From the sequence record PQ330092.1: DNA of 64,000 bases; one strand, given 5' to 3'. Below are positions 9,242-24,913 of this stretch, piece by piece. The notes beneath the pieces were generated by a model. That model worked only from the letters and a program-made list of their open reading frames with translations. It was not told the origin of the DNA and did not search any database. How positions within the stretch are numbered: position 1 is the stretch's first letter; each line of letters starts with the position of its first letter. A program made the translations under genes and the position numbers.

Positions 9242-9333
9242 GTTTAATAAAGTACTTGCAAACTAAGTTTAAAAGCGTATAATGTTTTACATCAGGTGGG
9301 GAATAGTTCCCCACTATATAAGAGGATTAAAAA

Positions 9334-9573
9334 ATGGCTAAATCAAAAATGTTCTTAGGTCACAAAAACAAAACTCATTGGAATGTAAGCCTTTGGATTA
9401 ATAACGATGAATCATTATACCGGTTGGCCCAGGACTTTATTAACGATAGCACTAATCGCAATGATGCGGCCCGTCATATGATGTTATTTTTAGAACAGAC
9501 TGGACAAGATAAAACACCGGACGGATTCAAATATAGCACTACTGCGATCCGTGCGGCGATGGTTGGAATGTAA
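9334..9573 (+). CDS. conserved phage hypothetical (WNVSLWINNDE...TPDG type)
   Basis: Own promoter, SD GAGGA; motif recalled from phage hypothetical proteins. Confidence 0.8.
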   Translation: MAKSKMFLGHKNKTHWNVSLWINNDESLYRLAQDFINDSTNRNDAARHMMLFLEQTGQDKTPDGFKYSTTAIRAAMVGM

Positions 9574-9661
9574 TAGAATAGAATTTATTTAAAGTACTAT
9601 TGCACGCTGATAGTACTTTATAATAGTGTTTTATTCATACACCAACGATAAGGGCAACAGC

Positions 9662-9928
9662 ATGAATATTAAGTATTTTGCGACGCGTGAACAAGCTCGG
9701 ATCGCCGCACGCCAGGACGGGGCAACGTTTAAAGATATGGGCGTACAATCGGAACGTGGTAAACGTTGGGCCATTGTAAAGCGTAGTACCGCCAGATCAT
9801 TACAGTACTGGTTAGCGGCCTTAAAAAGTCCCGATAGTGTATCGCGTCGAGTGGTAGAAATAAAGCTCGACCGAAAGGGCAACCGCGTGACCGTGTACCG
9901 TACTAAAAAGATTGCAGTACTTGAATAA
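9662..9928 (+). CDS. hypothetical basic protein; paralogue of 21607
   Basis: ATRExAR...FKDMG...RWA...RKGNRVTVY shared. Confidence 0.8.
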   Translation: MNIKYFATREQARIAARQDGATFKDMGVQSERGKRWAIVKRSTARSLQYWLAALKSPDSVSRRVVEIKLDRKGNRVTVYRTKKIAVLE

Positions 9929-10015
9929 AAAGTACTTGCAAACTATGTTTAAAGGCGTATAATGTTTTACATCGAGAGCGGGAACTCTTCCCGCCTATAA
10001 CCTGGAGTAATAAAA

Positions 10016-10246
10016 ATGACTAATATGTATATGACTGAAGTTAAAACCGTAAAAGATACTACCACGAATAAAACTACTTACTTACAGCGGATCTGTGGTG
10101 TATGGCAACGTATCAGCAAATCAAAGTACTTTAAATTAACATCATATGCCAATCGTTCGGATTCATTCAGTACTGAAATAAAAGGTAATAAAGTACACCA
10201 ATACGGCACTTATTATTATTATAGCCTGGACGCGATTGTAGTATAA
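10016..10246 (+). CDS. hypothetical early protein
   Basis: Own promoter/hairpin, SD GGAG. Confidence 0.8.
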   Translation: MTNMYMTEVKTVKDTTTNKTTYLQRICGVWQRISKSKYFKLTSYANRSDSFSTEIKGNKVHQYGTYYYYSLDAIVV

Positions 10247-10278
10247 GTAGTTTACAAATCTTTACAATTGCCAGTATT

Positions 10279-10450
10279 GACTTATTTTGTCAGTACTGGC
10301 ATAATGTATTCATTGGCAGATAAGCCGTAGCCCATAGGGTGCGGAAGTGTATCTATAGAAAAAGTAGTTTAGTACAGTTACAATTGTGCACCCGGTGGGT
10401 TAGCTGTTGTCATGGGGTATATTATACCAGTACTGGATAGTGCTGTCAAT
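10279..10450. promoter_or_regulatory. convergent pair of ORF-less promoter units with CCC-Ann-GGGTGC motifs
   Basis: + TTGACT-17-CATAAT leads to AGCCCATAGGGTGC (10329); minus TTGACA..TATAAT leads to AACCCACCGGGTGC (10388-10401). Confidence 0.7.
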
Positions 10451-10531
10451 ACTTTTTTTTTACTATTCAGTACTGAAAACTATTTTTAAAAAGTACTTGC
10501 AAACTATGTTTAAAGGCGTATAATGTTTTAC

Positions 10532-10606
10532 ATCAGGACGGGGAACGAAATAAGTAACTTCCCGTTAAGTAGCCCAGGAGTAAGGCACACGAAAAACTCC
10601 CCTGAT
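10532..10606 (+). ncRNA. candidate pseudoknot ncRNA, copy A
   Basis: Own promoter, no ORF. ATCAGG/CCTGAT closing stem; core TAAGTAGCCCAGGAGTAAGGCACACGAAAAACTCC. Confidence 0.7.
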
Positions 10607-10674
10607 AAAATAGTTTGACAAATGTTTTTAAAAGCGTATAATACTTACATCAACTACTGAATGAGGGTTACAAA

Positions 10675-11286
10675 ATGAAAACTATCACTACTACTACTTT
10701 CGTTATGGATTTTTCTGAATTGAACGCAGAACAAAAAACGTCAGCTATCGAACTGGTTCGGGAACGTGAAAAAAACTCAAACGACAATTATTTTTCTGAA
10801 AGTGAAATTGAATACTATAAAGAAACAGTACTACCGGAATATGGCATTAATGACGCTGAAATACAATTCAGTGGTTTTTGGTCCCAGGGTGACGGTGCAT
10901 CAATCAGTACTGACCACGTTGACGCAGTGAAGTTTTTACGCAAGGTAAGAGCATTAACTAAGTATCGCTCAATCCGTCACCTGCTGAATGAAGATGATTT
11001 GGCGATGAGTGTAAAGCGTTCGCACTCCCACTACTCGCATGAGAATACTGTAAGCGGGTACATTGAATCGGCTTACACTGATTTAACCGCAAAACAAGAA
11101 ACGTTAGTTAATGAGCTTGAGGAATTACTCACTGAAACTATTCGTGAATTGTCACGCAAGTTGTACCGTGATTTAGAGAATGCATATGAGGATCAATTCA
11201 CTACTGAAAACATTACGGCACTGATTGAGGGTAACGAGTATCAATTCAATGTTATTGATGGCGTAGTGGAATCAATCGAATATTAA
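10675..11286 (+). CDS. conserved phage hypothetical, acidic (FSGFWSQGDGAS motif)
   Basis: 203-aa ORF; own promoter TTGACA-16-TATAAT. Confidence 0.85.
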   Translation: MKTITTTTFVMDFSELNAEQKTSAIELVREREKNSNDNYFSESEIEYYKETVLPEYGINDAEIQFSGFWSQGDGASISTDHVDAVKFLRKVRALTKYRSIRHLLNEDDLAMSVKRSHSHYSHENTVSGYIESAYTDLTAKQETLVNELEELLTETIRELSRKLYRDLENAYEDQFTTENITALIEGNEYQFNVIDGVVESIEY

Positions 11287-11378
11287 TTTAAAAAGTACTT
11301 GCAAACTAAGTTTAAAAGCGTATAATACTTTATATCGAGAGCGGGAATAGTTCCCGCTACTAATGAGGAATACTACAA

Positions 11379-11543
11379 ATGAATACTTTTACCTTCGCTC
11401 AATTGAACGCCCTGGATGTATTGTCTGATGCTTTGCGGGATGCAACTGAAAGCGGTTTATTTGACAATGTTGACATTCACCCTGATGTAATTAATAATTT
11501 TTGTGATGCTATCGCAGAAGTACTGGAAGATCTAAAAAAATAA
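11379..11543 (+). CDS. hypothetical 54-aa acidic protein (below ORF-track cutoff)
   Basis: Own promoter/hairpin, SD GAGGA; MNTFTFAQLNALDVLSDAL. Confidence 0.75.
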   Translation: MNTFTFAQLNALDVLSDALRDATESGLFDNVDIHPDVINNFCDAIAEVLEDLKK

Positions 11544-11631
11544 TAGAAAGTACTTGCAATTAGTTTTTAGTACTGTATAATAGTTTACATAGAGGGGAGA
11601 AATGGTTCTCCCTGGTAATGAGGAAAATAAA

Positions 11632-11853
11632 ATGGCAAATATCACTACTCTTTCCCAACTGGAAGCACTGGTTAAATCTATGCGGGAACATGCCGACAAA
11701 ATCGGCGTACAAGATCCAGCCGTTTGCTTCTGCGACGAATTGAATGATGATACCCTGGTAATAGCAGAAGTCCAGGACGTTTCTAACTATTCCTCGCGTT
11801 ACACTGGCGGCGTAGCAAATAAAGGTGACTTCTGTTTATACCTTACAAAATAA
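11632..11853 (+). CDS. hypothetical early protein
   Basis: MANITT start after SD GAGGA. Confidence 0.8.
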   Translation: MANITTLSQLEALVKSMREHADKIGVQDPAVCFCDELNDDTLVIAEVQDVSNYSSRYTGGVANKGDFCLYLTK

Positions 11854-11919
11854 CAACGCGGGGAGATAATAACTCCCCGTTACTTTTTCAGTACTGAATC
11901 ATTTAATAGACGGATCTCG

Positions 11920-11990
11920 GCACCCGGTGGGTTAGTGACTGTTTCGTCTTGATGTAGTAATTATGCCAGTACTGGATGCACTTGTCAACA
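11920..11990 (-). promoter_or_regulatory. minus-strand ORF-less unit with AACCCACCGGGTGC
   Basis: Reverse complement TTGACA-17-CATAAT...CATCAAGACGAAACAGTCACTAACCCACCGGGTGC, near-identical to the + unit at 17893. Confidence 0.7.
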
Positions 11991-12095
11991 ACTATTTTTC
12001 AAATACTTTTTATTAAAATACTTGCTAATAGTTTTTAAACGCGTATAATGTTTTGCATAGGGGAGCGGTTCCCCTGGTAACTAAGGAATAAGAAA

Positions 12096-12332
12096 ATGCT
12101 TGAACAAATCAAATCAACGTCTGCTAATGTAACGGGAACGGTATCACACTTTATTGGTGATGAATCGCGGGGCGTTCCCTATTGTGCTGTACATGTAAAC
12201 ACTGAGGGTAACTACTGGTTTACGGTTTACGGATCATATTCATTTGGACGGCCAGGGCATCAAAAAATTCTGGATAAAGTACAGCCAACGGGTAAAAATA
12301 TCACGGCTGAAATGTTTTATAAAAAATCATAA
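12096..12332 (+). CDS. hypothetical early protein
   Basis: Own promoter/hairpin, SD AAGGA. Confidence 0.8.
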   Translation: MLEQIKSTSANVTGTVSHFIGDESRGVPYCAVHVNTEGNYWFTVYGSYSFGRPGHQKILDKVQPTGKNITAEMFYKKS

Positions 12333-12416
12333 AGTACTTGATAATAGTTTTTAGTACTGTATAATATTTTACATAGCACGGGGGAGCGGTTCCCCCTGGT
12401 AACTAAGGATAATCAA

Positions 12417-12716
12417 ATGAAAATTGCAATCATCGCCCTGGCTTTATCTGTTTCCTCTTTCGCTGTTAATGCGTCGTTAGATGTGAGTAGTGAAAAATTC
12501 ATTCAGTGCACTGTTGCGATGACCAATGAAAGTACGGGCGAGATTGTTTTAAAGGATTTAGAGATCCAGCCACAAGCATTTAAAAACGGGCCGTTCCATG
12601 AAGAAGACGAAAACGGTAGCACAACCATTTATTATGATGCAAGTACTAAGCGTGGATCGGTCACGGTTATGGATACAGAGAAAGTAACGCACACAGGAGT
12701 AATTAACTGTTTATAA
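12417..12716 (+). CDS. putative exported protein (signal peptide)
   Basis: MKIAIIALALSVSSFAVNA: basic-hydrophobic-AxA. Confidence 0.7.
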   Translation: MKIAIIALALSVSSFAVNASLDVSSEKFIQCTVAMTNESTGEIVLKDLEIQPQAFKNGPFHEEDENGSTTIYYDASTKRGSVTVMDTEKVTHTGVINCL

Positions 12717-12733
12717 TCTAGTACTGAATCACT

Positions 12734-12760
12734 AGCCCACCTTAAACAGTGGGCTTTTTT
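12734..12760 (+). terminator. rho-independent terminator
   Basis: AGCCCAC-cttaaaca-GTGGGCT-TTTTT; part of a 43-bp repeat. Confidence 0.85.
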
Positions 12761-12839
12761 GTTTTGTAGTACTGCATACTTTAAAAATAGTTTTAAAAAA
12801 GTAGTTGACATTACCACAAAAAGGCGTAGAATGTATTAC

Positions 12840-12901
12840 ATCAAGACGGGGAGCACTAAGTAGACCGCCAGTAAGTCGAACGAAAAACTGGACACGTCGA
12901 T
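12840..12901 (+). ncRNA. candidate pseudoknot RNA, copy C (leader of H-NS-like gene)
   Basis: Core TAAGTAGACCGCCAGTAAGTCGAACGAAAAACTGG with compensatory changes vs copies A/B. Confidence 0.65.
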
Positions 12902-12955
12902 AAAACTTTGATACACTAATAAACGTAAACTAAACTTTAATTGAGGATTTATAAA

Positions 12956-13438
12956 ATGGCTAATGTAAAATCATTCCTGAAAGCACTGATTTCAAACGAT
13001 ACTGTTATTGCTGCTGAATTGCTGGCTGAACTGGATAACGATACAATGAAAGCGGTACGCAACAATTTTAACATTGCGTACAGTGAAGCTAAAGAACTGC
13101 AAGCCAAAAAGGTAGCAGAACTGGAAGAACAGAAAAAAGCCCGTGAAGCAGAACTACAAGCAACAATCGAAAGTATCCAGGCGGCAGTAGTTGGATTGGA
13201 TCTGGAAGTGGTTGTAGAAATGGCACATAAAGCCCTGGCGGTTAAGTACGGTGAAGATAAGCCGGAATCTAAGCCTAAAAAATGGATTCAGGAACGCGTA
13301 GCGGTAGTACTGGACAACGGGGAAGAATATCTTATTCCGGTGCGTGGTAACTGCATTGCGGTAGTACTGGACGCTATCAAAGAAAGCGGTATGACTCGCG
13401 AGGAATGGATCGAAGCTCATCGCAAAGTTGAAGCATAA
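12956..13438 (+). CDS. H-NS-like protein (coiled coil + degenerate DNA-binding domain)
   Basis: C-terminus LDNGEEYLIPVRGNCIAVVLDAIKESGMTREEWI aligns by eye with E. coli H-NS [35 protein letters not shown]; central coiled coil. Confidence 0.55.
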   Translation: MANVKSFLKALISNDTVIAAELLAELDNDTMKAVRNNFNIAYSEAKELQAKKVAELEEQKKAREAELQATIESIQAAVVGLDLEVVVEMAHKALAVKYGEDKPESKPKKWIQERVAVVLDNGEEYLIPVRGNCIAVVLDAIKESGMTREEWIEAHRKVEA

Positions 13439-13459
13439 CAATTAAAGTACTGAATCACT

Positions 13460-13486
13460 AGCCCACCTTAAACAGTGGGCTTTTTT
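13460..13486 (+). terminator. rho-independent terminator (identical to 12734)
   Basis: Same hairpin + T-run. Confidence 0.85.
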
Positions 13487-13505
13487 GTGTCTGTAGTATT
13501 CCAGT

Positions 13506-13575
13506 CCACCAGCACCGCCTAGAATCGATTCTAACGCATTAAACTGATTATCTGATACATCGCCCTAGCTGGTGG
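13506..13575. other. Chi sites 13506-13513(-) and 13568-13575(+) around 14-bp palindrome TAGAATCGATTCTA
   Basis: Seen directly; intergenic. Confidence 0.75.
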
Positions 13576-13723
13576 CGTTAAGGTCGTTAGAATGCGATTG
13601 AGAGCGTTTAAAGTATTTTGCAAAAAGTAATAAAAAGTACTTGCACGATAAAGAGATTAGCGTATAATGTTTTACATCGAGAGGGGGAAACGGTTCTCCT
13701 TCCAAATCAAAGGAATCAAAACA

Positions 13724-13951
13724 ATGGCTATTATCATTACTCGCGTATCTGGTACTACTGGCAACGAACAAGTAGTTGCAGTCATTACTAACAAGGCAGG
13801 TGCGGAATTGCAAAATGCAATGAATACCTGGGCCGTTAATGAGTTCGGTCAGTGGGCAAGTGTAGCATACATTGAAACCTATCAAGTGCCGTCGATTAGT
13901 TTAACTGATTTGGGCGTTGAGCGTATCCTTTGCCTGGATGAATTAAATTAA
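13724..13951 (+). CDS. hypothetical early protein
   Basis: MAIIITRV start after SD AAGGA. Confidence 0.8.
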   Translation: MAIIITRVSGTTGNEQVVAVITNKAGAELQNAMNTWAVNEFGQWASVAYIETYQVPSISLTDLGVERILCLDELN

Positions 13952-14036
13952 AAAAGTACTTGCAAAGTAAATCGAATAAAGTATAATACATTACATCAAG
14001 GGGAGAAATGATTCTCCCCACTACAAGGAAACTAAA

Positions 14037-14249
14037 ATGGCTATCATTACTAAAATCAAAGTTAACAAGACTATCGTTAAACTGGCAGAAGTGAAAGAAG
14101 GTTATAAAGTATCTTGGTGCGGTATGTATCGGACGTTCGCAGATATAGATGATGCGATCAATTATTACAGTGACACGGTTAAAAACTTTGTTCGTGCTGA
14201 TGTGGTTATGGCAGTGGCAACATATAAAGCAGCGAAAGAAAGTAAGTAA
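14037..14249 (+). CDS. hypothetical early protein; weak similarity to 17173
   Basis: Own promoter/hairpin. Confidence 0.8.
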   Translation: MAIITKIKVNKTIVKLAEVKEGYKVSWCGMYRTFADIDDAINYYSDTVKNFVRADVVMAVATYKAAKESK

Positions 14250-14340
14250 AAATATTATCACAGTACTATTGACATAGTTTGATAGTACTGGCATAATAGA
14301 TTTTATCAAGACGACACATATTAATTTAAGGAATACTAAA

Positions 14341-14664
14341 ATGGCTAAAACTATCATCAACACCGTTTCCCTGGCTGCAATCCATGCAATCAATGTTGAC
14401 GGTAAACGTTGGACTGATTCATATGGCAATACTTATCATTCTTGTCATGTAAGCGTTGAACTGGATAACGGCTTGAATGATCTGGCGGTTGAATCATTTA
14501 CTTATGGCTATGAGGATGCATATCAACAAACGGCGGTATCACTCTTAAAGGAATCAGTAGACGGGCTTGATACTGTTGAAACCTCCCTCTATCGTTTGTG
14601 CAATGATCTTAATATCCCGTTGCATTGTACTGTACAGGATGTAAAACGTAAAAAAGATCTTTAA
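14341..14664 (+). CDS. hypothetical; paralogue of 21188
   Basis: RWTD..GNTYHSC...FTYGY...DVKRKKD shared. Confidence 0.85.
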   Translation: MAKTIINTVSLAAIHAINVDGKRWTDSYGNTYHSCHVSVELDNGLNDLAVESFTYGYEDAYQQTAVSLLKESVDGLDTVETSLYRLCNDLNIPLHCTVQDVKRKKDL

Positions 14665-14744
14665 TTAGCTTTACTTTATGCAGATACTTTGATATAGTGT
14701 CTGCATAGGGGAAAGAAATTAAATCAACTTAAGAGGATAGTAAA

Positions 14745-15014
14745 ATGAAAAATATCAGTACTTTAATCGATGCAGGTACACATGTTCGTCGGTCTATGGT
14801 TGCAACCAGTACTACAAAACAAGTAGCAAGCGGTTATCTTGTATTTGTGCACGATGGTAAACTCCTGGAACGTTCAATCAATTTTGATGTTAAAAACAAT
14901 TGCCGTTTTATTATCTTTAAGCGTGAACAATATAAAATTGATTTGCCAGCGAAGCCCATAAGCGGGGCGTACAACGTGCAATCATTGTTTGAGCGTCAAC
15001 CATACACCTATTAA
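14745..15014 (+). CDS. hypothetical early protein
   Basis: SD GAGGA. Confidence 0.8.
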   Translation: MKNISTLIDAGTHVRRSMVATSTTKQVASGYLVFVHDGKLLERSINFDVKNNCRFIIFKREQYKIDLPAKPISGAYNVQSLFERQPYTY

Positions 15015-15065
15015 TCAAAACATCGTTAGCGGTCGATTCAGGCCGCTTATATTGGGGATTATACC

Positions 15066-15338
15066 ATGAACGTTAATCAAGTACTGAATGAGATCGAAAG
15101 CATCATAAAACCGATGAAGCGTACTGATGCTATGTTAACACCGGAAGAATGCCGCCTTTATGAGCGTTACAGCGTCGAACAAGTCCAGGCGATGGCTATG
15201 GCTACCCCAGCCGTTAAACCGCCTGAGAATGCGTTACAGGACGTTACAGGGGATTATATCATTAATCCAGTACTAGGGAAGATGGCGGCAATCACCGAAG
15301 ATCAACAAGACTACTTAAGCCAGTACTTAAAAGGTTAA
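15066..15338 (+). CDS. hypothetical early protein
   Basis: SD GGGGA. Confidence 0.75.
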   Translation: MNVNQVLNEIESIIKPMKRTDAMLTPEECRLYERYSVEQVQAMAMATPAVKPPENALQDVTGDYIINPVLGKMAAITEDQQDYLSQYLKG

Positions 15339-15343
15339 TTAAT

Positions 15344-15553
15344 ATGCTTACTGTACAGGATAAGATCGACATCTTAAAGGTTAATATGTATGTGATTGAT
15401 GCCGTACCTGGTAAAGTATTTGCATACGATGACACCACTGTAAGCGATTTCTACTATAGCCAGGACGTGGGGGATCTTTCTGTACAGTCGGTTATTGAAA
15501 ACGTAGTTAATGCAGCGTATGAGCATTTACTTTCAAATAGTACTTGCAATTAG
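15344..15553 (+). CDS. hypothetical early protein
   Basis: ORF track; SD AAGGT. Confidence 0.75.
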   Translation: MLTVQDKIDILKVNMYVIDAVPGKVFAYDDTTVSDFYYSQDVGDLSVQSVIENVVNAAYEHLLSNSTCN

Positions 15554-15622
15554 TTTTTAAACGCGTATAATGTTTTACATGAAGGGGAGAAATAGTACTC
15601 CCCACTAATTAAGGAATAGTAA

Positions 15623-15769
15623 ATGAAAGCATCAAAAAAGAGTACTAACAAGAAAGCACGTTCACCTTTCGCTGGGGTATTCCCTTTACGTTTCGTTGAT
15701 GAAGTAGTTTCCTACCCGCCGGGCCTTACTCCTGAGATGGTAGAAAGTTTGCGTAAATCTAAAAAATAA
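15623..15769 (+). CDS. hypothetical 48-aa basic protein (below cutoff)
   Basis: Own promoter/hairpin, SD AAGGA; MKASKKSTNKKARSPF. Confidence 0.7.
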   Translation: MKASKKSTNKKARSPFAGVFPLRFVDEVVSYPPGLTPEMVESLRKSKK

Positions 15770-15850
15770 TACTTGCAATTAGTTTTCAGTACTGTATAAT
15801 GTTTTACATCAAGGGGAGAAATGATTCTCCCCACTATCAGGAGAAACAAA

Positions 15851-16003
15851 ATGAAACAATATAATGCTCGGTTTGATGTTACTATCGGTAACGGCAAAGG
15901 TCAATTTTCTTTCAGTACTCGACGCAGTTATACAGAAAACTTCCTGCGTAATTGTGCACTGACCGCCGCTCAAATTAAACACTATTTTCAGGCTAAAAAA
16001 TGA
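15851..16003 (+). CDS. hypothetical 50 aa
   Basis: MKQYNARF after SD AGGAG. Confidence 0.75.
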   Translation: MKQYNARFDVTIGNGKGQFSFSTRRSYTENFLRNCALTAAQIKHYFQAKK

Positions 16004-16089
16004 AATCATTAGCTTATTACAGTTCGGCCCTGGTCGGTGCATTGATCGCGGCATTGTTAGTAACCTATCTATTCTTTATGGTGATTTAA
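16000..16089 (+). CDS. 29-aa hydrophobic membrane peptide
   Basis: ATGA overlap; MKSLAYYSSALVGALIAALLVTYLFFMVI. Confidence 0.55.
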   Translation: MKSLAYYSSALVGALIAALLVTYLFFMVI

Positions 16090-16224
16090 ATGAATCCTAA
16101 CGGTATAATTTACAGTACTCCTAAAACGAAAGCAGACAAGGTAAACGCTAAAAAAGCGAAAGTAAAGGAGTACATCAAACAAGGAATGACACGAAAGGCC
16201 GCAGTACTTAAAGCTAAAAAATAA
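16090..16224 (+). CDS. 44-aa Lys-rich peptide
   Basis: Abuts upstream stop; MNPNGIIYSTPKTKADKVNAKKAK. Confidence 0.55.
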   Translation: MNPNGIIYSTPKTKADKVNAKKAKVKEYIKQGMTRKAAVLKAKK

Positions 16225-16228
16225 ATGA

Positions 16229-16318
16229 AAAAAGTGGTTGACTTCGGTCAGCCATTTTGCTATTATATATTCATTGAGAGATAGCTCACTAGCCCACAGG
16301 GTGCAGGAGTGTATCTAT
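16229..16318 (+). promoter_or_regulatory. terminator hairpin fused to promoter, then CCC-ACA-GGGTGC unit
   Basis: AAAAGTGGTTGAC-TTCG-GTCAGCCATTTT overlaps TTGACT-17-TATTAT; motif 16291-16304 followed by TGTATCTAT. Confidence 0.75.
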
Positions 16319-16438
16319 TGTATAAGTATTGAGTACTGAAAACTATTTTTAAAAAGTACTTGCAAACTATCTCAATAGGCGTATAATGTTTTACATCGAA
16401 AGGGGAAACGGTTTCCCCTGGTAATAAGGAAACAAATC

Positions 16439-16780
16439 ATGACTATTGCAATTGCTCAATCTAACTTTGAAAATGAAATCATCGCTCAGACACTGCGTTT
16501 AAGTGATGGTCGGGCCGAAATTAATTACGGTTTCAATTCAGGCGGTTGTGAAAAATATCAGTACTTTGTAACGGCTGATGGCGGTGTCCTGGGTATCAAT
16601 ACAGTTATTGTAAACATCCAAAAAATTAATTTCAATGATCCAGACGATAGCCAGTTTTACATCACAGGCGTAGACGTGAACTATGAGGATGACTCACTAA
16701 CTGATGATCACACTGGCGAGCGGTTAGAAAGTGCATACGGTGAAGATGATTATCAGTCCGGTCCAGAAGATTTCGAATAA
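16439..16780 (+). CDS. conserved phage hypothetical, acidic (YFVTADGG...VNYED...ESAY)
   Basis: Own promoter/hairpin, SD AAGGA. Confidence 0.85.
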   Translation: MTIAIAQSNFENEIIAQTLRLSDGRAEINYGFNSGGCEKYQYFVTADGGVLGINTVIVNIQKINFNDPDDSQFYITGVDVNYEDDSLTDDHTGERLESAYGEDDYQSGPEDFE

Positions 16781-16876
16781 TATAAAAAAATAGTTTGACA
16801 ATAGATTATAGTACTGTATAATAGTTTACATCAAGGGGAGAAAAACTTCTCCCCACTAACAGAGAGAGAAAACAAA

Positions 16877-17089
16877 ATGGCTAATATCCGCACTGTACTG
16901 AAAAATGCAAAACAAGTTTTATTTTCTGACCACGATTATTTTAATAAAGATATTACAGGCGTTCGGAATATCAAAGATGTAAAAAGTGTTATGGGTATCT
17001 ATTGCAATATGAAACGTGTCGGCACGTTCGGCGATAAAGTACTATACCAGGCAGGGGATTACAATTTTACACTGACTATTATTAACTAA
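16877..17089 (+). CDS. hypothetical early protein
   Basis: Own promoter/hairpin. Confidence 0.8.
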   Translation: MANIRTVLKNAKQVLFSDHDYFNKDITGVRNIKDVKSVMGIYCNMKRVGTFGDKVLYQAGDYNFTLTIIN

Positions 17090-17172
17090 AAATATTATCA
17101 CAGTACTATTGACATAGTTTGATAGTACTGACATAATAACTTTTATCAACTACACTACTAAGGAATTAAAAA

Positions 17173-17352
17173 ATGGCTATCATCGCAAAAACTGAAATCG
17201 TTGGTATGGATTCTATCATCATGACGTTTGAAGATCAAAAAGGTATGTATGTAGTTTCCTATGGTGATTATGTTCGGGAGTATGAAACGGTAGACGAAGC
17301 CTTTGAAAGTTACATTCGCCAGGTGAATAAAGCATACGACGACTACCGCTAA
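17173..17352 (+). CDS. hypothetical 59 aa (below cutoff)
   Basis: Own promoter, SD AAGGA; MAIIAKTEIVGMDS. Confidence 0.75.
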   Translation: MAIIAKTEIVGMDSIIMTFEDQKGMYVVSYGDYVREYETVDEAFESYIRQVNKAYDDYR

Positions 17353-17442
17353 AATATATTACCAGTACTATTGACAACGTTTGATAGTACTGTATAATAA
17401 GTTTTATAAACAGTAGTTAACTTAACCTAAGAGAGAAATAAA

Positions 17443-17586
17443 ATGATCGCACTGGATTCATTCATCGACGCAGTACTGGCAAAAACTGGCGAGGATCTGA
17501 CCGCAGAACAATACGCGATGATCGAGCAATGTCAGCAAGACGGTAAATCGGTGAAAGATACTGTTAAGATTATCCGCAAGATGTAA
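17443..17586 (+). CDS. hypothetical 47 aa (below cutoff)
   Basis: Own promoter; MIALDSFIDAVLAKTGEDL. Confidence 0.7.
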   Translation: MIALDSFIDAVLAKTGEDLTAEQYAMIEQCQQDGKSVKDTVKIIRKM

Positions 17587-17592
17587 GATTAT

Positions 17593-17620
17593 AGCCCACT
17601 GGTTAACGCTGGTGGGCTTT
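17593..17620 (+). terminator. terminator-like hairpin containing a Chi site (17608-17615)
   Basis: AGCCCACTGG-ttaa-CGCTGGTGGGCTTT. Confidence 0.6.
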
Positions 17621-17691
17621 AATTCATCACCCTATACAATGCCAGTACTCAACCGTTTATCTCGTTAGAATGCGTTACAGGACGTTTAACA

Positions 17692-17889
17692 ATGATTAGC
17701 ATGAAATCAGTACAAAAACAAATAGAAACATTATCAAAAATTAAACGTAAACAGTACTCCTTAGAATATACAATCAATGGTAACTATCATCTAATGAAAG
17801 AGAATAATTTTATAGTCATTGATGAATCATTGCAAATCATTAGTATAGTACTGAAAGCATTAATCAATGACAGAAAAAAATTAAAATAA
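17692..17889 (+). CDS. hypothetical 65 aa
   Basis: ORF track; no clear own promoter. Confidence 0.55.
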   Translation: MISMKSVQKQIETLSKIKRKQYSLEYTINGNYHLMKENNFIVIDESLQIISIVLKALINDRKKLK

Positions 17890-17892
17890 TCT

Positions 17893-17975
17893 ATTGACAA
17901 TATCATCCAGTACTGGCATAATACTTACATCAAGACGAGAACGTCACTAACCCATAGGGTGCACAAATGTAACTG
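17893..17975 (+). promoter_or_regulatory. ORF-less unit with AACCCATAGGGTGC (17949-17962)
   Basis: TTGACA-17-CATAAT, hairpin GACG-agaa-CGTC, motif, TGTAACTGT. Confidence 0.7.
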
Positions 17976-18220
17976 TATAATATTGATCAAAAAATGATCT
18001 GATCAATACTTGATCAATTTGCGTAAAGTAGTATAATTCTATGCAGTTGGTTAGACGAAAGGTTATGATTAGTAGTGCAAGTGTATAAAAATTTTCATGG
18101 TGTATCGTTCCGCACATATGGCAATGAATATGTGGTATCATGTGGATTGGAAAAAGTAAGAACAAGTAATATTATTGTCGCATTACAGTACTATAGTATT
18201 TTTATAATGAGGTTAAAATA

Positions 18221-18478
18221 ATGGCTGTAGGATACGCGAAAGATGGGGCCGAGCAAGACGAGATTAACGCAGTGATTCAGGCCGCCGTTAACCACGCTAG
18301 AAAGCAAATTAACGCACAAATAGAATCACTGATACATTGCCTCGACTGCGGCGATAAAATCCCTGAGAATCGACGCCAGGCCGTTATAGGGTGCATGTAT
18401 TGTATTACTTGCCAGGAGGATCATGATAGTACTTTTAAAAGAGATCCGCGTAATTGTTGGCATAGATCTATGAGATAA
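18221..18478 (+). CDS. TraR/DksA-family C4 zinc-finger protein (YbiI-like)
   Basis: CLDCGDKIPENRRQAVIGCMYCITCQE matches CxxCGxxIPxxRRxAxPGxxxCxxCQ; N-terminus MAVGYAKD resembles YbiI MASGWAND. Confidence 0.85.
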   Translation: MAVGYAKDGAEQDEINAVIQAAVNHARKQINAQIESLIHCLDCGDKIPENRRQAVIGCMYCITCQEDHDSTFKRDPRNCWHRSMR

Positions 18479-18542
18479 AAAGTAATTGACAGTACTGAAA
18501 GATAGTGTATAATGTTTTATATCTTAACTGAGGATAGTAATC

Positions 18543-18899
18543 ATGGGAATACAACATATCACGCGTACTACTGACAATGGCGAGATCACTGGCTATCAAG
18601 TACAGGGCAAAGTAGCACAATTGCAGTACTGGTTTGTTAAACGTGGAATCATTGCACCGGATCTTGATTATGACCGTGTAGCGTTTATTGATTCTCTTTA
18701 TGTTGATCCTGATAGTCGGGGCAATGGTGAAGGTAACGAATTAATGAATGCCTTTATCGATGCCGCCGATGATTCAGATTGTATCATCTTAGAATGCGAT
18801 ACGGGAGAAGATAACGCCTTTAATCTTAAAGAATGGTACGAAGGTTTCGGATTCGAGGTATTGATAGATAGTGAATATCCTATCATGATTTTATCATAG
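18543..18899 (+). CDS. GNAT-family acetyltransferase
   Basis: Motif A IDSLYVDPDSRGNGEGNELM; motif B LKEWYEGFGF. Confidence 0.85.
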   Translation: MGIQHITRTTDNGEITGYQVQGKVAQLQYWFVKRGIIAPDLDYDRVAFIDSLYVDPDSRGNGEGNELMNAFIDAADDSDCIILECDTGEDNAFNLKEWYEGFGFEVLIDSEYPIMILS

Positions 18900-18977
18900 T
18901 ACTTGCATTTAGTTTTCAGTACTGTTATAGTACTTGCATCAAGGGGAAACATCTTCCCCTACTAAGAGGAAATAAAA

Positions 18978-19166
18978 ATGGAAAACTTATCAAGTATTTT
19001 AGTACAAGATGATTTCGGTAATCCTGGAAGTGCTATCATTGTTCGGGGTAATAAAGCAACATTTGTTATTGCTGGTGGACCTGTACAGCGTAGCATTAAA
19101 AACAATGCCGTTACTATTAATAATGTACGCTATCGCTTAGATAAAGAATTGATTCATAAACTGTAA
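18978..19166 (+). CDS. hypothetical early protein
   Basis: Own promoter/hairpin, SD GAGGA. Confidence 0.8.
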   Translation: MENLSSILVQDDFGNPGSAIIVRGNKATFVIAGGPVQRSIKNNAVTINNVRYRLDKELIHKL

Positions 19167-19193
19167 TATTAATTTAATAGAGGATAACAATAA

Positions 19194-19517
19194 ATGTACA
19201 TTCATACTACTATCACAAAGGAAGTCCGTTGCCAGTTCGAAAGTATTCCGGGCGTATGTTTCATCACTGGTACGTTTTCCCCTGGTGATCGTGATAATCC
19301 AGTACTGTTACAATTACGCCATCCATCATGGGATAAAGCATTTGATCTACCGTTGAATGAATTCGCAACTACTGCTGAAAAGTACATTAAAAATATTCGC
19401 GAGAATGATCGACTATTCATTAATGCTTTTAGTGATGCCGCGTTAAGTGAGATCCATGCTGTATTGGTTGCAATCATGGAATCAATGGAGAAAACTATAT
19501 TCAAACAAGGTGAATAA
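19194..19517 (+). CDS. hypothetical early protein
   Basis: SD GAGGA. Confidence 0.8.
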   Translation: MYIHTTITKEVRCQFESIPGVCFITGTFSPGDRDNPVLLQLRHPSWDKAFDLPLNEFATTAEKYIKNIRENDRLFINAFSDAALSEIHAVLVAIMESMEKTIFKQGE

Positions 19518-19600
19518 AAACTATTGACAATGCAATCTAGTACTGTATAATAAGTTACATGAAGGGGAGAAATGATTCTCCCCACTGAGAGGAAAGAAAA

Positions 19601-19813
19601 ATGCAAGGTCAACTAATCGTTCGTAAATGGTCTGATACTAACGAAAAACCGTGGGATGTACAATACATCGGACCGGATGGGGTATCACGTTATCAGCCTG
19701 GCGTAACGCATAGTACTGAGCAATATGCCGCCGCTCACCGCGAACGCCTGTTAGAATCCATGAAACAGGGATTCTGTGAAAAATTCATTCAAGATCATTG
19801 GCTGAAAGATTAA
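19601..19813 (+). CDS. hypothetical early protein
   Basis: Own promoter/hairpin. Confidence 0.8.
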   Translation: MQGQLIVRKWSDTNEKPWDVQYIGPDGVSRYQPGVTHSTEQYAAAHRERLLESMKQGFCEKFIQDHWLKD

Positions 19814-19830
19814 TAGAAGGAGTACAGCTT

Positions 19831-19923
19831 ATGCAAATGAATCCGATGATTATTGTTTTAGCTGTACTTATGATCATTCATGCAATTGTAGAAGTATTAA
19901 CGCAATCAGGAGTAATAAAATGA
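19831..19923 (+). CDS. 30-aa membrane peptide
   Basis: SD AAGGAG; MQMNPMIIVLAVLMIIHAIVEVL. Confidence 0.6.
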   Translation: MQMNPMIIVLAVLMIIHAIVEVLTQSGVIK

Positions 19924-20093
19924 TTCAAGTAGAATTATCAGTACTGAAAGATCTGTTTTATCGGATTGGTACTACTGGCGAATATCCGAAGGGTGATAAT
20001 GCAAAACTTTACGTATCACTCGACTTATGGCAACGCGAACAATTAGCAACGTCCTGGCGTAAAGGTAAAGCAGATAGCGAGGTGAAAGCATGA
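19920..20093 (+). CDS. hypothetical 57 aa (below cutoff)
   Basis: SD AGGAG, ATGA overlap; MIQVELSVLKDLFY. Confidence 0.7.
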   Translation: MIQVELSVLKDLFYRIGTTGEYPKGDNAKLYVSLDLWQREQLATSWRKGKADSEVKA

Positions 20094-20239
20094 AAGAATT
20101 CTTATTCGAAGTAGTGTTTCAAGGTGTCGGTAGTAACCAACTGATTCGCTCAAGTGGTTACAATGTTAACCAGGCATGGAATAACATTAAACAAATGTAC
20201 CCGAACGCTATCACCTATCGCAACCCGAAAGAAGTTTAA
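20090..20239 (+). CDS. hypothetical 49 aa (below cutoff)
   Basis: SD GAGGT, ATGA overlap; MKEFLFEVVFQG. Confidence 0.7.
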   Translation: MKEFLFEVVFQGVGSNQLIRSSGYNVNQAWNNIKQMYPNAITYRNPKEV

Positions 20240-20249
20240 AAAGAATTGA

Positions 20250-20346
20250 AAAAGGGATTGACTCCGGTCAGTCCCTTTGCTATTATATACGCATAGAAAC
20301 AAATCAGCCCACAGGGTGCATAAATGTATCTATTGTTAGCTGGTGG
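20250..20346 (+). promoter_or_regulatory. terminator-promoter fusion, CCC-ACA-GGGTGC unit (20306-20319) and Chi (20339-20346)
   Basis: AAAGGGATTGAC-TCCG-GTCAGTCCCTTT overlaps TTGACT-17-TATTAT. Confidence 0.75.
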
Positions 20347-20412
20347 CTAGTACTGAAAACTATTTTTAAAAAAGTACTTGCATTGTACTTAGAATCAAGT
20401 ATAATGTTTTAC

Positions 20413-20485
20413 ATCAGGACGGGGAACAAAACAAGTAACCCCGTTAAGTAGTCCAGGAGTAAGACATACGAAAACCTCCCCTGAT
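20413..20485 (+). ncRNA. candidate pseudoknot ncRNA, copy B
   Basis: Own promoter, no ORF; core TAAGTAGTCCAGGAGTAAGACATACGAAAACCTCC. Confidence 0.7.
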
Positions 20486-20554
20486 AAAAAAGATTGACAA
20501 TAGTTTGAAGTACTGATAAAATAATCACATCAACTACTGATAAGGTAATACAAA

Positions 20555-20755
20555 ATGAAACAATTCACTTTCGGCGTAGTAGGTTTCCCAGTATCTAACG
20601 GTGTTTACAATTCAGAACGCGGTGCAAAAAATGCAGCAAGCCGGGCGTATGGTAGTCAGCGTGATCTCCAAGTAGGTTATATCAGTACTATTAGTAACAT
20701 GTTTATTCCAGTATCTCAGCGTAAAGCTGGTAGCATGAAATGGGAAACTATCTAA
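20555..20755 (+). CDS. hypothetical early protein
   Basis: Own promoter. Confidence 0.8.
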   Translation: MKQFTFGVVGFPVSNGVYNSERGAKNAASRAYGSQRDLQVGYISTISNMFIPVSQRKAGSMKWETI

Positions 20756-20824
20756 TAAAATAGATTGACAAAGTATCTTAGTACTGTATAATACTTACAT
20801 CAACCACTGATAAGGAAACATAAA

Positions 20825-21100
20825 ATGCGGATTCTACTGACAGCTAACGAAATCGAGCAAGTACTGACTACTAACCTGGAAGACTGGAAACGTGAAGCAG
20901 ATATCCAGGCGGTTCAATGGCTTAACGATAAGTTAACGCCGGATGACTTAAGCAAGATTGTAGATCCTCAATTCTACGAAGATATCCACGACACCGCGTT
21001 AAGCGTCGAGGATGTACTTGATAAGCATTTTATTGATATTGATTTGCAGGTTTACGGTCGTAAAAACTTTATCACTATTCACGACATTTACAATAATTAA
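20825..21100 (+). CDS. hypothetical acidic protein
   Basis: Own promoter, SD AAGGA. Confidence 0.8.
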   Translation: MRILLTANEIEQVLTTNLEDWKREADIQAVQWLNDKLTPDDLSKIVDPQFYEDIHDTALSVEDVLDKHFIDIDLQVYGRKNFITIHDIYNN

Positions 21101-21187
21101 GTATTGACAAAGTATCTTAGTACTGTATAATAGTTTACATCAAGCGAGGGGAATGGTTCCCCTCCTAACAAAGAGAGAGAAATAAAA

Positions 21188-21511
21188 ATGACTATGATCC
21201 TTACCCAGAAAGTAGAACTGAAAATTGTAACCTCCTTTGACATTAAAGTTAATCGCTGGACTGATCGGAACGGTAACACTTACCACTCTTGCTACGTGTC
21301 CGCGTTAATTGGCGACCGCTGGGAAGACCTGGGACATGAAACCTTTACTTACGGTTACGGTACACAAGGCGAATACACGGGCTTGGAGATCATTAAAGAA
21401 ACCGTTATAGGTTTCAACCCGAAAGAAAAAGTTATTCACCGCATCGAGGAAGAGATCAACAAAGAAATAACAGTTCGCTACCACGATGTAAAACGTAAGA
21501 AAGACATGTAA
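21188..21511 (+). CDS. hypothetical; paralogue of 14341
   Basis: RWTDRNGNTYHSC...FTYGY...DVKRKKDM. Confidence 0.85.
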   Translation: MTMILTQKVELKIVTSFDIKVNRWTDRNGNTYHSCYVSALIGDRWEDLGHETFTYGYGTQGEYTGLEIIKETVIGFNPKEKVIHRIEEEINKEITVRYHDVKRKKDM

Positions 21512-21606
21512 TAGAATCCATTTAAAGTACTATTTGACATTGCCCAGATAGTACTTTATAATAGACTCTAACTTGTAGTACTAACTTAACTAATAGGATG
21601 TATACC

Positions 21607-22002
21607 ATGATTACTAAATTCTACGCTACCCGTGAAGCTGCCCGTATTGTTGCACGCGAGGAAGGCGAAACATTTAAAGACATGGGCAAAGATGCACCGA
21701 AAGGTCAACGCTGGGCCGTACAGTTCAAAGAGATCTCTGATATTGTGAATTCACCGGAGCCAGTACTAACAGCAGCAGAACTAAAACGAGCGGATTTACT
21801 GGCGTCAATACTTGATGCACAAGATGAGTTTATCGCTGATTCTGATATCAAAGTACAGACAAACCATACCGCATGGACTCACGCGGATCACCTGGCAAAC
21901 CTTAAGCGTCCAAGTGAACTGATTCGCAACCAGAAAGAGATCCGACACGACCGTAAGGGTAATCGTGTAACAGTATACAGTAAACGCCGCCAGGTTATCT
22001 AA
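21607..22002 (+). CDS. hypothetical; paralogue of 9662 with a longer middle
   Basis: ATREAAR...FKDMG...DRKGNRVTVY. Confidence 0.8.
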   Translation: MITKFYATREAARIVAREEGETFKDMGKDAPKGQRWAVQFKEISDIVNSPEPVLTAAELKRADLLASILDAQDEFIADSDIKVQTNHTAWTHADHLANLKRPSELIRNQKEIRHDRKGNRVTVYSKRRQVI

Positions 22003-22063
22003 TAACTTGCAGTACTAACAACACGGCGGGATCAGTTCCCGCCTTTTTTATAGGACAAACAAA

Positions 22064-22318
22064 ATGATTAAGGTTCAACTATATAAAGATAACATCTTAC
22101 GGGTACACTATAAAGCACCTCAGAGAATCATCACAAAGGCCGTACAGCTTGCTAATGAGTTTATTAATGGTAACCTATTACCTAGGAAGTTAAGCAACGG
22201 GAAACTGCGTGTAATCGATGTAGACACTAACAACAGAATAGTAATAGAGAACACAGGAAAGATAAACCTTTATGAGCATCAACAATACAATAAGAAAATA
22301 AAACTAATATCACGTTGA
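22064..22318 (+). CDS. hypothetical basic protein
   Basis: SD AGGA. Confidence 0.75.
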   Translation: MIKVQLYKDNILRVHYKAPQRIITKAVQLANEFINGNLLPRKLSNGKLRVIDVDTNNRIVIENTGKINLYEHQQYNKKIKLISR

Positions 22319-22371
22319 CAGTACTCAATTGTTTTAGTACTATGTACACATACCAACACGGGAGAAACAAA

Positions 22372-22590
22372 ATGAAATTATCTAAAATCGAAAAGAAAAC
22401 TATTGATGAAGCAGTTAAGCACGGTTATACCTTTCGTAATGATTCACATTTTACCAATTTTCAACAAGGGTATCGTACTATTAAAAAACTAATTGACAAA
22501 GGTTTATTAGTTGAAGTCAATAACGGTAACGGTATCGAGTATCAACCAACACAAGACGCATTTTATTTTAAGAAATATAATATTATCTAA
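22372..22590 (+). CDS. hypothetical, possible winged-helix
   Basis: YRTIKKLIDKGLLVEV resembles a wHTH recognition helix/wing; weak. Confidence 0.6.
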   Translation: MKLSKIEKKTIDEAVKHGYTFRNDSHFTNFQQGYRTIKKLIDKGLLVEVNNGNGIEYQPTQDAFYFKKYNII

Positions 22591-22648
22591 TTGACAGTAC
22601 TCAAATGTTTTAGTACTATATGTACATACCAACACGGGGAAAAACAAA

Positions 22649-22891
22649 ATGATTACTTTAGAAAAACGTATCAAAGAAACTACATCGCTGGTGGAATTGT
22701 TAACAGTACTGAAATGTAAAACTACTCGGTTTAGTACACCGGACTTTATTAATATGGTTGATGTTAACGGTCGTTATCGTATTGCAGTAGAACAAGGCAC
22801 GGCAAAAGTATTCAGTACTAAAAACACTAAGGAAGTGATTCACGCGGTTAGTGTAAAAAAAGTAGTTGCCATTGATAGTAAAGTACTGTAA
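22649..22891 (+). CDS. hypothetical early protein (contains Chi 22687-22694)
   Basis: Own promoter. Confidence 0.75.
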   Translation: MITLEKRIKETTSLVELLTVLKCKTTRFSTPDFINMVDVNGRYRIAVEQGTAKVFSTKNTKEVIHAVSVKKVVAIDSKVL

Positions 22892-22922
22892 TATAGTTTC
22901 ATTAACTCAAGGAGAACATGCA

Positions 22923-23507: not shown

Positions 23508-23519
23508 AAAAAGATTAAA

Positions 23520-23608
23520 AAAGGGATTGACTCCGGTCAGTCCCTTTGCTATTATATATTCATTGAGAGATAACTCACTGACCCATAGGGTGCGGAAGTG
23601 TATCTATT
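23520..23608 (+). promoter_or_regulatory. terminator-promoter fusion and CCC-ATA-GGGTGC unit (23580-23593)
   Basis: Same block as 20250 and 25780. Confidence 0.75.
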
Positions 23609-23729
23609 ATATAAGTATTCAGTACTGAAAACTATTTGATAAAAAGTACTTGCATTGTACTTAGAATCAAGTATAATGTTTTATATCGAGAGGGGGAAAC
23701 GGTTCTCCCTGGCAATAAGGAATAAAATC

Positions 23730-23951
23730 ATGACTACAATGACTTGCATTTACGCTTCCAATCTTCTGAATGATGCGGCCTTTAATGTTGATTCAGAATA
23801 TCAATGTTATCGGGATGAAAATAAAAAAGTTTTTGTAGTTGATAATAATGGTTTCCATATTGAATTACAATCCGGCTTCACTGGTGTTGATGGTAAATCA
23901 GTATGGGGCGTACAGGATGATAAAGGCACATATCATTTTAAACGTAATTAA
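23730..23951 (+). CDS. hypothetical early protein
   Basis: MTTMTC after SD AAGGA. Confidence 0.8.
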   Translation: MTTMTCIYASNLLNDAAFNVDSEYQCYRDENKKVFVVDNNGFHIELQSGFTGVDGKSVWGVQDDKGTYHFKRN

Positions 23952-24846: not shown

Positions 24847-24913
24847 TAACTAAAACAAAGTATAATGTTTTGCATAGGGGGAGATATCCTCCCCCACTAA
24901 AAGGAGTAATAAA

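Follow-up and report, generated by a model that had tools for sequence, protein, structure and literature searches.

The 64,000-nucleotide stretch of sequence record PQ330092.1 analysed here, referred to as the window, derives from an Asteriusvirus-type jumbo coliphage and displays the direct terminal repeat of this phage, 20,114 bp in length, twice in succession, the two copies being identical base for base. The terminal repeat, annotated as DTR in related phages, carries about 30 sigma-70 early promoters and three distinct copies (A, B and C) of a small RNA element, each located just downstream of a sigma-70 promoter. The motif TAAGTAG-NC-NNN-AGTAAG-NC-NN-ACGAAAA occurs at positions 10566, 12857 and 20445 and, shifted by exactly 20,114 bp, recurs at 30680, 32971 and 40559, while 0 occurrences are expected as judged from 100 shuffles. 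The first-pass annotation of three copies per terminal repeat is thus right. The coordinates of all features are collected in the table.

Table. Features of the terminal repeat and of the RNA elements in the window
Feature	Coordinates	Strand	Description
Terminal repeat, first copy	7148-27261	+	20,114 bp; about 30 sigma-70 early promoters and the three RNA elements
Terminal repeat, second copy	27262-47375	+	duplicate elements at 30646-30720, 32954-33015 and 40527-40599
Promoter of copy A	10497-10524	+	sigma-70, TTGCAA-16-TATAAT; transcription start at about 10530-10532, inferred from the -10 spacing
Copy A	10532-10606	+	putative closing helix 10532-10537/10601-10606; generic 5' hairpin 10538-10565; J (UAAGUA) 10566-10571; S1 10572-10574/10584-10586; L1 10575-10576; S2 10577-10581/10596-10600; L3 ACACGAAAA 10587-10595; 47.5 bits
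Promoter after copy A	10615-10642	+	consensus, TTGACA-16-TATAAT; 9 nt after copy A; drives ORF 10675-11286 (phrog_5162, unknown function)
Promoter of copy B	12805-12832	+	sigma-70, TTGACA-16-TAGAAT
Copy B	12840-12901	+	no 5' hairpin; putative closing pairs 12845-12848/12895-12898 (GACG/CGTC) and 12840-12842/12899-12901; J 12857-12862; S1 12863-12865/12875-12877; S2 12868-12872/12887-12891; L3 12878-12886; 50.9 bits; followed by ORF 12956-13438 (phrog_27871)
Promoter of copy C	20378-20405	+	sigma-70, TTGCAT-16-TATAAT
Copy C	20413-20485	+	putative closing helix 20413-20418/20480-20485; hairpin 20419-20444; J 20445-20450; S1 20451-20453/20463-20465; S2 20456-20459/20476-20479; L3 20466-20475; 49.1 bits
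Promoter after copy C	20494-20521	+	TTGACA-16-TAAAAT; 9 nt after copy C; drives ORF 20555-20755 (phrog_7744, unknown function)

The initial observation of a repeated pseudoknot element with compensatory base changes is confirmed. The pairings noted at first pass, GCC/GGC, GAC/GTC and GTC/GAC for stem 1 (S1) and GGAGT/ACTCC, CCAGT/ACTGG and GGAG/CTCC for stem 2 (S2), are all found as described, and a covariance model built from 29 distinct cores of several phage lineages scores the three copies at 47-51 bits, with the next best hit in the window at 7 bits. Two points require correction, though. The copies followed at once by a consensus promoter are the first and the third, not the first and the second as noted initially, while copy B is followed only by weak promoter-like matches and subsequently by an ORF. 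Equally, the proposed closing helix ATCAGG/CCTGAT of copies 1 and 3 is plausible and appears in the minimum free energy fold, but never varies among its relatives, is not significant per sequence and is only suggestive in a crude permutation across 7 lineage types (5 of 5040). The hairpin in front of copies 1 and 3 is not specific to the element, but is the generic 5' hairpin that most early transcripts of the repeat, from at least 19 of 30 early promoters, carry.

Not anticipated initially, the family is peculiar neither to this phage nor to terminal repeats. The same core is present, apparently unnoticed, in phage T7 (nt 536-600, between promoters A1 and A2), in T3 and in about 490 T7-like records (Autographiviridae), and equally in Justusliebigvirus, Vequintavirinae and other jumbo phages. 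On the other hand, no convincing copy was recovered from the bacterial genomes and plasmids searched. A pattern scan of 185,579 bacterial species genomes gave only chance-like hits, and blastn found no similar sequence in 5,426 complete E. coli genomes or in 72,556 PLSDB plasmids. All bacterial genome hits and most metagenome hits of the pattern scans fail the S1/S2 pairing test or lie in unrelated contexts, with four hits that paired by chance (numbered L042, L081, L063 and L109) excluded on context. As this filter made use of pairing, unbiased support for the structure is drawn from the hairpin and loop-tail helices and from the sequences retrieved by BLAST, which were not chosen for pairing and yet keep it.

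The core of the element runs, 5' to 3', from the invariant UAAGUA through the 5' strand of S1 (GNC), two nucleotides, the 5' strand of S2 (4-6 nt), (A)UAA, the 3' strand of S1 (GN'C) and NN-ACGAA(A/C)A to the 3' strand of S2, an H-type pseudoknot from which the 3' tail pairs back to a segment 5' of the core. In T7-like phages this segment is the loop of an adjacent upstream hairpin, which gives a double pseudoknot, while in the jumbo phage it is probably the first bases of the transcript. Across the core, S1 is 100% paired, with its middle pair taking all four Watson-Crick forms (AU 25, UA 5, CG 3, GC 1), three S2 pairs covary, and 94.8% of cells are paired compared with 79% in shuffles and 25-42% with slid partners. 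In 35 T7-like sequences the four helices are 95.6% paired and 11 of 19 pairs show compensatory change (0 of 500 shuffles); 5 of the 6 pairs of the loop-tail helix covary, and nine different fully complementary versions of this helix, in which the 3' tail is often the A2 -35 hexamer, were seen. RNAalifold identifies the two nested helices on its own. The compensatory changes and the G-U pairs, which fit only the transcribed strand, led us to reject a DNA-level site or chance. Likewise, a coding explanation was rejected, as the only ORFs over the elements are mechanical ones of 31-39 amino acids that start upstream of the transcription start, and the A-tract is not explained as an UP element, since its distance to the next -35 varies from 2 to 47 nt.

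A match to a known Rfam family, named beforehand as an outcome that would overturn the claim, was not obtained. Rfam 15 gave 0 hits at gathering threshold in the window, no hit overlapping the elements at E<=10 in 11 kb or in T7 and other loci, and only noise when 91-131 nt covering the bare element were searched (PepN thermometer at 12 bits against 83 required, RT-7 at 8 bits against 117 required). In the searchable literature no description was found, the literal T7 sequence being quoted only inside template or primer listings. The family, as defined by UAAGUAG ... (A)UAAG ... ACGAA(A/C)A with paired S1 and S2 downstream of a sigma-70 early promoter, a definition all three window copies fulfil, is considered new.

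The genetic context argues for autonomy of the element. Of 48 distinct instances, 46 have a sigma-70-like promoter starting within 110 nt downstream, mostly 2-47 nt, no terminator follows and no Shine-Dalgarno sequence overlaps. The downstream genes are unrelated, with three different PHROGs of unknown function in the window and gene 0.3 (Ocr or SAMase) in T7 and T3. Moreover, the element seems accessory, as a laboratory-evolved T7 growing on BL21 has lost its 3' half. Assembled contigs from RNA-seq of T7 infections each span the whole stretch, but give no ends and no proof of transcription.

The interpretation offered at first pass, an early RNA decoy or antitoxin mimic, a ligand-binding RNA or a new ribozyme, is partly supported: a structured RNA family with crossing stems and compensatory changes exists, whereas a specific type III antitoxin mimic is weakened. 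We regard as demonstrated a conserved, sense-strand, structured RNA module of about 50-75 nt, transcribed by host RNA polymerase from strong early promoters as read from the sequence; any function, whether decoy, ligand binding or catalysis, is inferred. As the element travels with its own promoter, unrelated genes lie downstream, a second promoter almost always follows and the unpaired nucleotides are almost invariant across unrelated phage lineages that share enterobacterial hosts, it might most likely (probability about 0.35) act as a self-contained, aptamer-like RNA, made in the first seconds of infection, that would bind, by sequestering, decoying or sensing, one conserved host component, either a protein or a small molecule, rather than regulate the gene behind it. 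In this view, the multiple copies in the jumbo phage, three per repeat and six per genome, would raise the dose. However, a free-standing small RNA would be expected to have a terminator, which is not present, and the near-universal downstream promoter could be part of the mechanism, which would favour a cis-acting role, or a simple by-product of promoter-dense early regions.

In a wider reading, which we consider about as likely as not, an undescribed class of phage RNA, present in T7 itself, folds into a double pseudoknot and acts in the first seconds of infection as an RNA-only effector against a conserved enterobacterial target, such as a defence protein, an immune signalling nucleotide or the host transcription or decay machinery, or else represents a new ribozyme class, having spread horizontally together with its promoter among unrelated virulent phages. 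T7 is among the best-studied genomes in biology, yet a roughly 60-nt stretch between A1 and A2 carries strong covariation for a four-helix double pseudoknot. Conservation of the core almost letter for letter in at least four unrelated lineages of virulent phages of Enterobacterales, always in the very first host-made transcripts and without a convincing copy in the bacterial genomes scanned, points to a specific and strongly selected interaction with the host, which would add an RNA player to phage host take-over or counter-defence. With the element in T7, every hypothesis becomes directly accessible to standard genetics and biochemistry.

Among the alternatives, a cis-acting modifier of the transcribing polymerase, working like HK022 put RNA, survives best, though it is unlikely on present evidence. 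The nascent fold would bind the RNA polymerase that made it and change pausing or termination, and the promoter-like sequence just downstream might act as a sigma-70-dependent pause that gives the RNA time to load. In agreement, the position is always promoter-proximal on host-polymerase early transcripts irrespective of gene identity, no terminator follows, the downstream -35/-10 pair overlaps the 3' strand of the fold in T7-like phages, and in Cronosvirus and in one contig, L023, an rrn-type boxA (CGCTCTTTAACAA) follows within 25-60 nt. The window, however, has no boxA, so that this association is not general, polymerases starting at A2 and A3 of T7-like phages bypass the element, and in the jumbo repeat almost every gene has its own promoter, so that read-through is not obviously needed.

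A small self-cleaving ribozyme that processes the 5' leader of early transcripts is a more doubtful possibility. The compact, multi-pseudoknotted fold with nearly invariant unpaired nucleotides resembles small ribozymes, and as the usual T7A1 in vitro template stops at +53, inside the first hairpin, decades of T7A1 work would not have revealed cleavage. On the other hand, no ribozyme model of Rfam is hit even in the 91-131 nt search space, the order of the helices differs from pistol, HDV, twister and hammerhead, and no cleavage site can be named. Equally doubtful is a nuclease barrier or stabiliser that would block 3'-to-5' exonucleases or RNase E entry so that a stable 5' leader fragment, or the mRNA, survives. 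Pseudoknots are good exonuclease blocks and the element replaces or extends the simple 5' hairpin of the repeat, but a plain hairpin serves the other transcripts, transcripts from the second promoter lack the element, and near-invariance of about 18 unpaired nucleotides across unrelated phages is far more than a physical barrier needs. A mimic of a type III antitoxin that neutralises a ToxN-family abortive-infection toxin is improbable. Although the element is a small pseudoknotted RNA with an A-rich segment, expressed early and dispensable in a laboratory strain, the copies are single and lie 2.3 and 7.6 kb apart, with no adjacent units found by the model instead of tandem repeats of a 34-45 nt unit, no Rfam ToxI hit was obtained, the three downstream proteins have no ToxN domain, and the E. 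coli genomes and plasmids searched contain no similar sequence. A riboswitch controlling the downstream gene is the least likely, as, in spite of H-type pseudoknot aptamers with an A-rich third loop (preQ1-I, SAM-II), there is no terminator, no Shine-Dalgarno sequestration and no Rfam riboswitch hit, and a promoter usually lies between element and gene.

Comparison with established systems places the element as follows. The HK022 putL/putR antiterminator RNAs are equally phage RNA elements of about 60-70 nt just downstream of early host-polymerase promoters, which need no adjacent gene and, should the cis-acting alternative apply, would share action on the transcription complex; put, however, consists of two stem-loops, which act in cis on RNA polymerase and suppress downstream terminators, rather than a pseudoknot, sequence similarity is lacking and here later tandem promoters bypass the element. 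ToxI and the pseudo-ToxI of phage PhiTE are likewise small pseudoknotted RNAs that a phage can use as an early decoy, but ToxI works as tandem 36-nt repeats next to toxN and the phage mimic copies the host sequence, whereas the element comes as single units without a toxin gene and without a look-alike in the E. coli genomes and plasmids searched. The phage-associated pistol ribozyme shares a hairpin whose entire loop forms a 5-6 bp pseudoknot with a downstream strand, an A-rich joiner (UAAAUAG against UAAGUAG) and a UAAG segment (UUAAG against (A)UAAG), but in pistol the helix order is P1, loop-pseudoknot, P2 and P3, with the 3' strand of the pseudoknot inside P2, while here the hairpin is followed by the core S1/S2 and the loop pairs with the extreme 3' tail, outside the second stem, and there is no P3 hairpin and no identifiable G-U cleavage site. 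The preQ1-I and other H-type pseudoknot aptamers show the same core order of stem 1 5', stem 2 5', stem 1 3', A-rich loop and stem 2 3' within less than 40 nt, but here stem 1 has only 3 bp, the conserved nucleotides differ and the 3' strand of S2 is followed by a promoter and not by a ribosome site. Finally, the T4 gene 32 leader pseudoknot, a protein-binding nucleation site at the 5' end of a phage early/middle mRNA, is tied to a single gene and its own product, whereas the element described here sits in front of unrelated genes in unrelated phages.

Megablast places bases 10000-21000 of the window in Asteriusvirus-type jumbo coliphages, with JP4 at 99.9% and PBECO4, 121Q, G17 and others as further matches. 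A 20,114-bp direct terminal repeat is laid out twice, and related records annotate the same region as DTR. The repeat carries about 30 near-consensus sigma-70 promoters, all pointing the same way, of which at least 19 are followed, a few bases after the inferred start site (ACATCAAG...), by a perfect G+C-rich hairpin such as GGGGAGAA-nnnn-TTCTCCCC. Most early transcripts of the repeat start with ACATCAAG or ACATCGAGAG before forming this 5' hairpin, and the initial transcribed sequence CATCGAGAG is the same as that of T7 A1 (ATCGAGAGGG), which suggests that promoter cassettes are shared between unrelated phages. The hexamer AGTACT occurs 133 times in the 20-kb terminal repeat against about 5 expected and is built into the early promoters, with AAAAAGTACTTGCA just before the -35 and TAGTACTGTATAAT as an extended -10.

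Coordinates of the RNA element copies and of associated features
Sequence	Position	Feature
Window	7148-27261	First copy of the direct terminal repeat, identical to 27262-47375
Window	27262-47375	Second copy of the direct terminal repeat
Window	9256-26348	About 30 early promoters
Window	10566	Scaffold of copy 1, recurring 20,114 bp later
Window	12857	Scaffold of copy 2, recurring 20,114 bp later
Window	20445	Scaffold of copy 3, recurring 20,114 bp later
Window	12956	ORF preceded by copy 2
Window	12720-12762 and 13447-13489	Identical stretch of about 43 nt flanking the cassette with copy 2 and its ORF
Window	50596-50821 and 50865-51090	Pair of 226-nt direct repeats, 76% identity, outside the terminal repeat
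Window	63037-63091	Run of 55 N, far from the elements
IMG/VR contig of 39,937 bp	536-600	RNA element
T3 record	467-472	-10 of promoter A1
T3 record	572-577	-35 of promoter A2
MZ318363 (T7_del_holin_F20)	65-298 (locus)	Deletion with its left end in the third loop of the element
Salmonella phage KE18	262-321 (locus)	Element with insertion in the second loop

The observation of the first-pass annotation, a recurrent scaffold with two interleaved stems, holds. None of the occurrences of the scaffold is expected by chance, a covariance model of the core gives 47-51 bits for these copies while nothing else in the window scores above 7 bits, and each copy follows its own promoter. The stems are exactly as described in that annotation, whereas its statement on which copies are directly followed by another promoter requires correction, as these are copies 1 and 3. 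Copies 1 and 3 consist of a putative closing helix (AUCAGG/CCUGAU), the generic 5' hairpin and the pseudoknot core, with a consensus promoter following 9 nt later. Copy 2 lacks the hairpin, appears to close with GACG/CGUC and precedes an ORF. The cassette that holds copy 2 is flanked by an identical stretch (AGTACTGAATCACT plus the terminator hairpin AGCCCACCTTAAACAGTGGGCT and a T-run) and looks like a moron-like insertion or duplication. In phage CMSTMSU, the record of which is marked UNVERIFIED, the counterpart of copy 3 has small deletions in the core (34.9 bits), which probably reflects assembly errors in that record.

The element is not confined to this phage. Short-query blastn and pattern scans found the same core in Justusliebigvirus (outra, muut and others), in Vequintavirinae (LTH01), in the jumbo phages Hallingskeid (Erwinia) and fENko-Kae01 (Klebsiella, inside its annotated DTR), in Munch-like Salmonella phages and in T7-like podoviruses. 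The IMG/VR contig that carries the element is identical over the 65-nt element to GenBank T7 records, and in the annotated T3 record the element lies, without an annotation of its own, between the A1 -10 and the A2 -35. A 65-nt T7 query hits 490 phage records at one place each, covering Teseptimavirus, Teetrevirus, Kayfunavirus, Przondovirus-like Klebsiella phages, Cronosvirus, and Aeromonas, Morganella and Serratia phages. On the other hand, no credible copy was found in one genome from each of 185,579 prokaryote species, in 5,426 complete E. coli genomes or in PLSDB plasmids.

On 34 sequences from all lineages, S1 (G-N-C with G-N'-C) is paired in every sequence, with the middle pair being A-U in 25, U-A in 5, C-G in 3 and G-C in 1, and three pairs of S2 covary. 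Of all cells, 94.8% pair, against 79% after shuffling and 25-42% when partners are slid, although the sequence set for the S1/S2 statistics was partly chosen by requiring pairing. The BLAST-derived sequences are free of that bias, as are two additional helices that appear in T7-like phages and played no part in how the sequences were collected. One of these is a 4-bp hairpin directly 5' of UAAGUAG, while the other pairs the whole loop of that hairpin with the bases just after S2. This loop-tail helix was seen in nine different fully complementary forms, namely GUCAA/UUGAC, GUCAAG/CUUGAC, UCAAC/GUUGA, GUCAUC/GAUGAC, GUCAC/GUGAC, GUCAGA/UCUGAC, GUCGGU/ACCGAC, GAUUAG/CUAAUC and GCUAA/UUAGC. On 35 sequences the four helices are 95.6% paired and 11 of 19 pairs show changes on both sides, with no shuffle reaching the observed values, and RNAalifold recovers the nested pair of helices unaided. 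G-U pairs occur in four of the pairs and would be A-C mismatches on the other strand; the structure therefore belongs to the transcribed strand.

In T7 and T3 the 3' strand of the loop-tail helix is the TTGAC of the A2 -35 hexamer, and where the next promoter lies further away, the pairing is kept with other sequences. For the copies in the window the equivalent pairing is between the first bases of the transcript and the tail, which is plausible, but invariant among close relatives and not significant one sequence at a time. Matched 5' segments and tails from seven lineage types do, however, beat almost all permutations (5 of 5040, without correction for relatedness). The unpaired bases UAAGUAG, (A)UAA(G) and ACGAA(A/C)A are almost invariant across all lineages. 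Rare variants are UGAGUAG in one metagenome contig, UCAG in GAP227, AAGAAAA in LTH01 and ACGAAAG in fENko-Kae01. The copy of the Kayfunavirus KE18 carries a hairpin-like insertion of about 20 nt in the second loop and has lost the UAA, being either a degenerate copy or showing a tolerated insertion point.

The genes behind the three copies of the window belong to three unrelated PHROGs of unknown function, while in T7 and T3 the first gene is 0.3. In 46 of 48 distinct instances a sigma-70-like promoter begins within 110 nt after the core, usually 2-47 nt; the arrangement is therefore promoter, element, promoter, gene. No terminator follows the element and no ribosome site overlaps it. In the laboratory-evolved T7_del_holin_F20, grown on BL21, a deletion starts inside the third loop of the element (after ...GTCGCACGA) and removes the 3' strands together with A2, A3 and downstream early sequence, so that the intact fold is dispensable in that strain. 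These facts argue against a riboswitch or any gene-specific regulator and fit a module that works on its own or on the polymerase that makes it.

The interpretation of the first-pass annotation, an undescribed pseudoknot RNA serving as an early RNA decoy or antitoxin mimic, a ligand-binding RNA or a new ribozyme, is partly supported. Favoured here, with a confidence of about 0.35, is a self-contained aptamer-like RNA that would bind one conserved host component very early, which could be a defence or house-keeping protein or a small molecule, and the multiple copies in the jumbo phage would raise the dose. While the fold and its distribution are demonstrated by the sequence comparisons, the binding role is an inference, as are a discrete RNA species, a partner and an activity; the only RNA-seq data for T7 were assembled contigs spanning the whole region, which show no ends.

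The strongest, though still doubtful, alternative is a put-like RNA that modifies the transcribing polymerase, in which case the ever-present downstream promoter might serve as a sigma-dependent pause. An rrn-type boxA (CGCTCTTTAACAA) lies 25-60 nt downstream of the element in the T7-like phages Dev-CD-23823 and GAP227 (boxA follows the element in Cronosvirus) and in one metagenomic T7-like contig, L023, as it does further downstream in T7, but it is absent from the window. A ribozyme is unlikely but cannot be dismissed. The widely used T7A1 template ends at +53, inside the first hairpin, and thus never contained the element. A nuclease barrier, equally unlikely, explains the position but not the invariance of the loops. 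A type III antitoxin mimic is disfavoured by the lack of tandem repeats and of any look-alike in the complete E. coli genomes or PLSDB plasmids.

A match to an established Rfam family would have spoken against a new family, but no Rfam 15 family, including the ribozyme models, matches. Literature searches found no description of the element and no sign that a conserved pseudoknot family has been recognised, although a passing mention of dyad symmetry in old scanned T7 papers, which fell outside the searches, cannot be excluded; the T7 sequence appears in papers only inside template listings. Among known RNAs, there are loose resemblances to the pistol ribozyme, in which the order of the helices, however, differs from that of the element.
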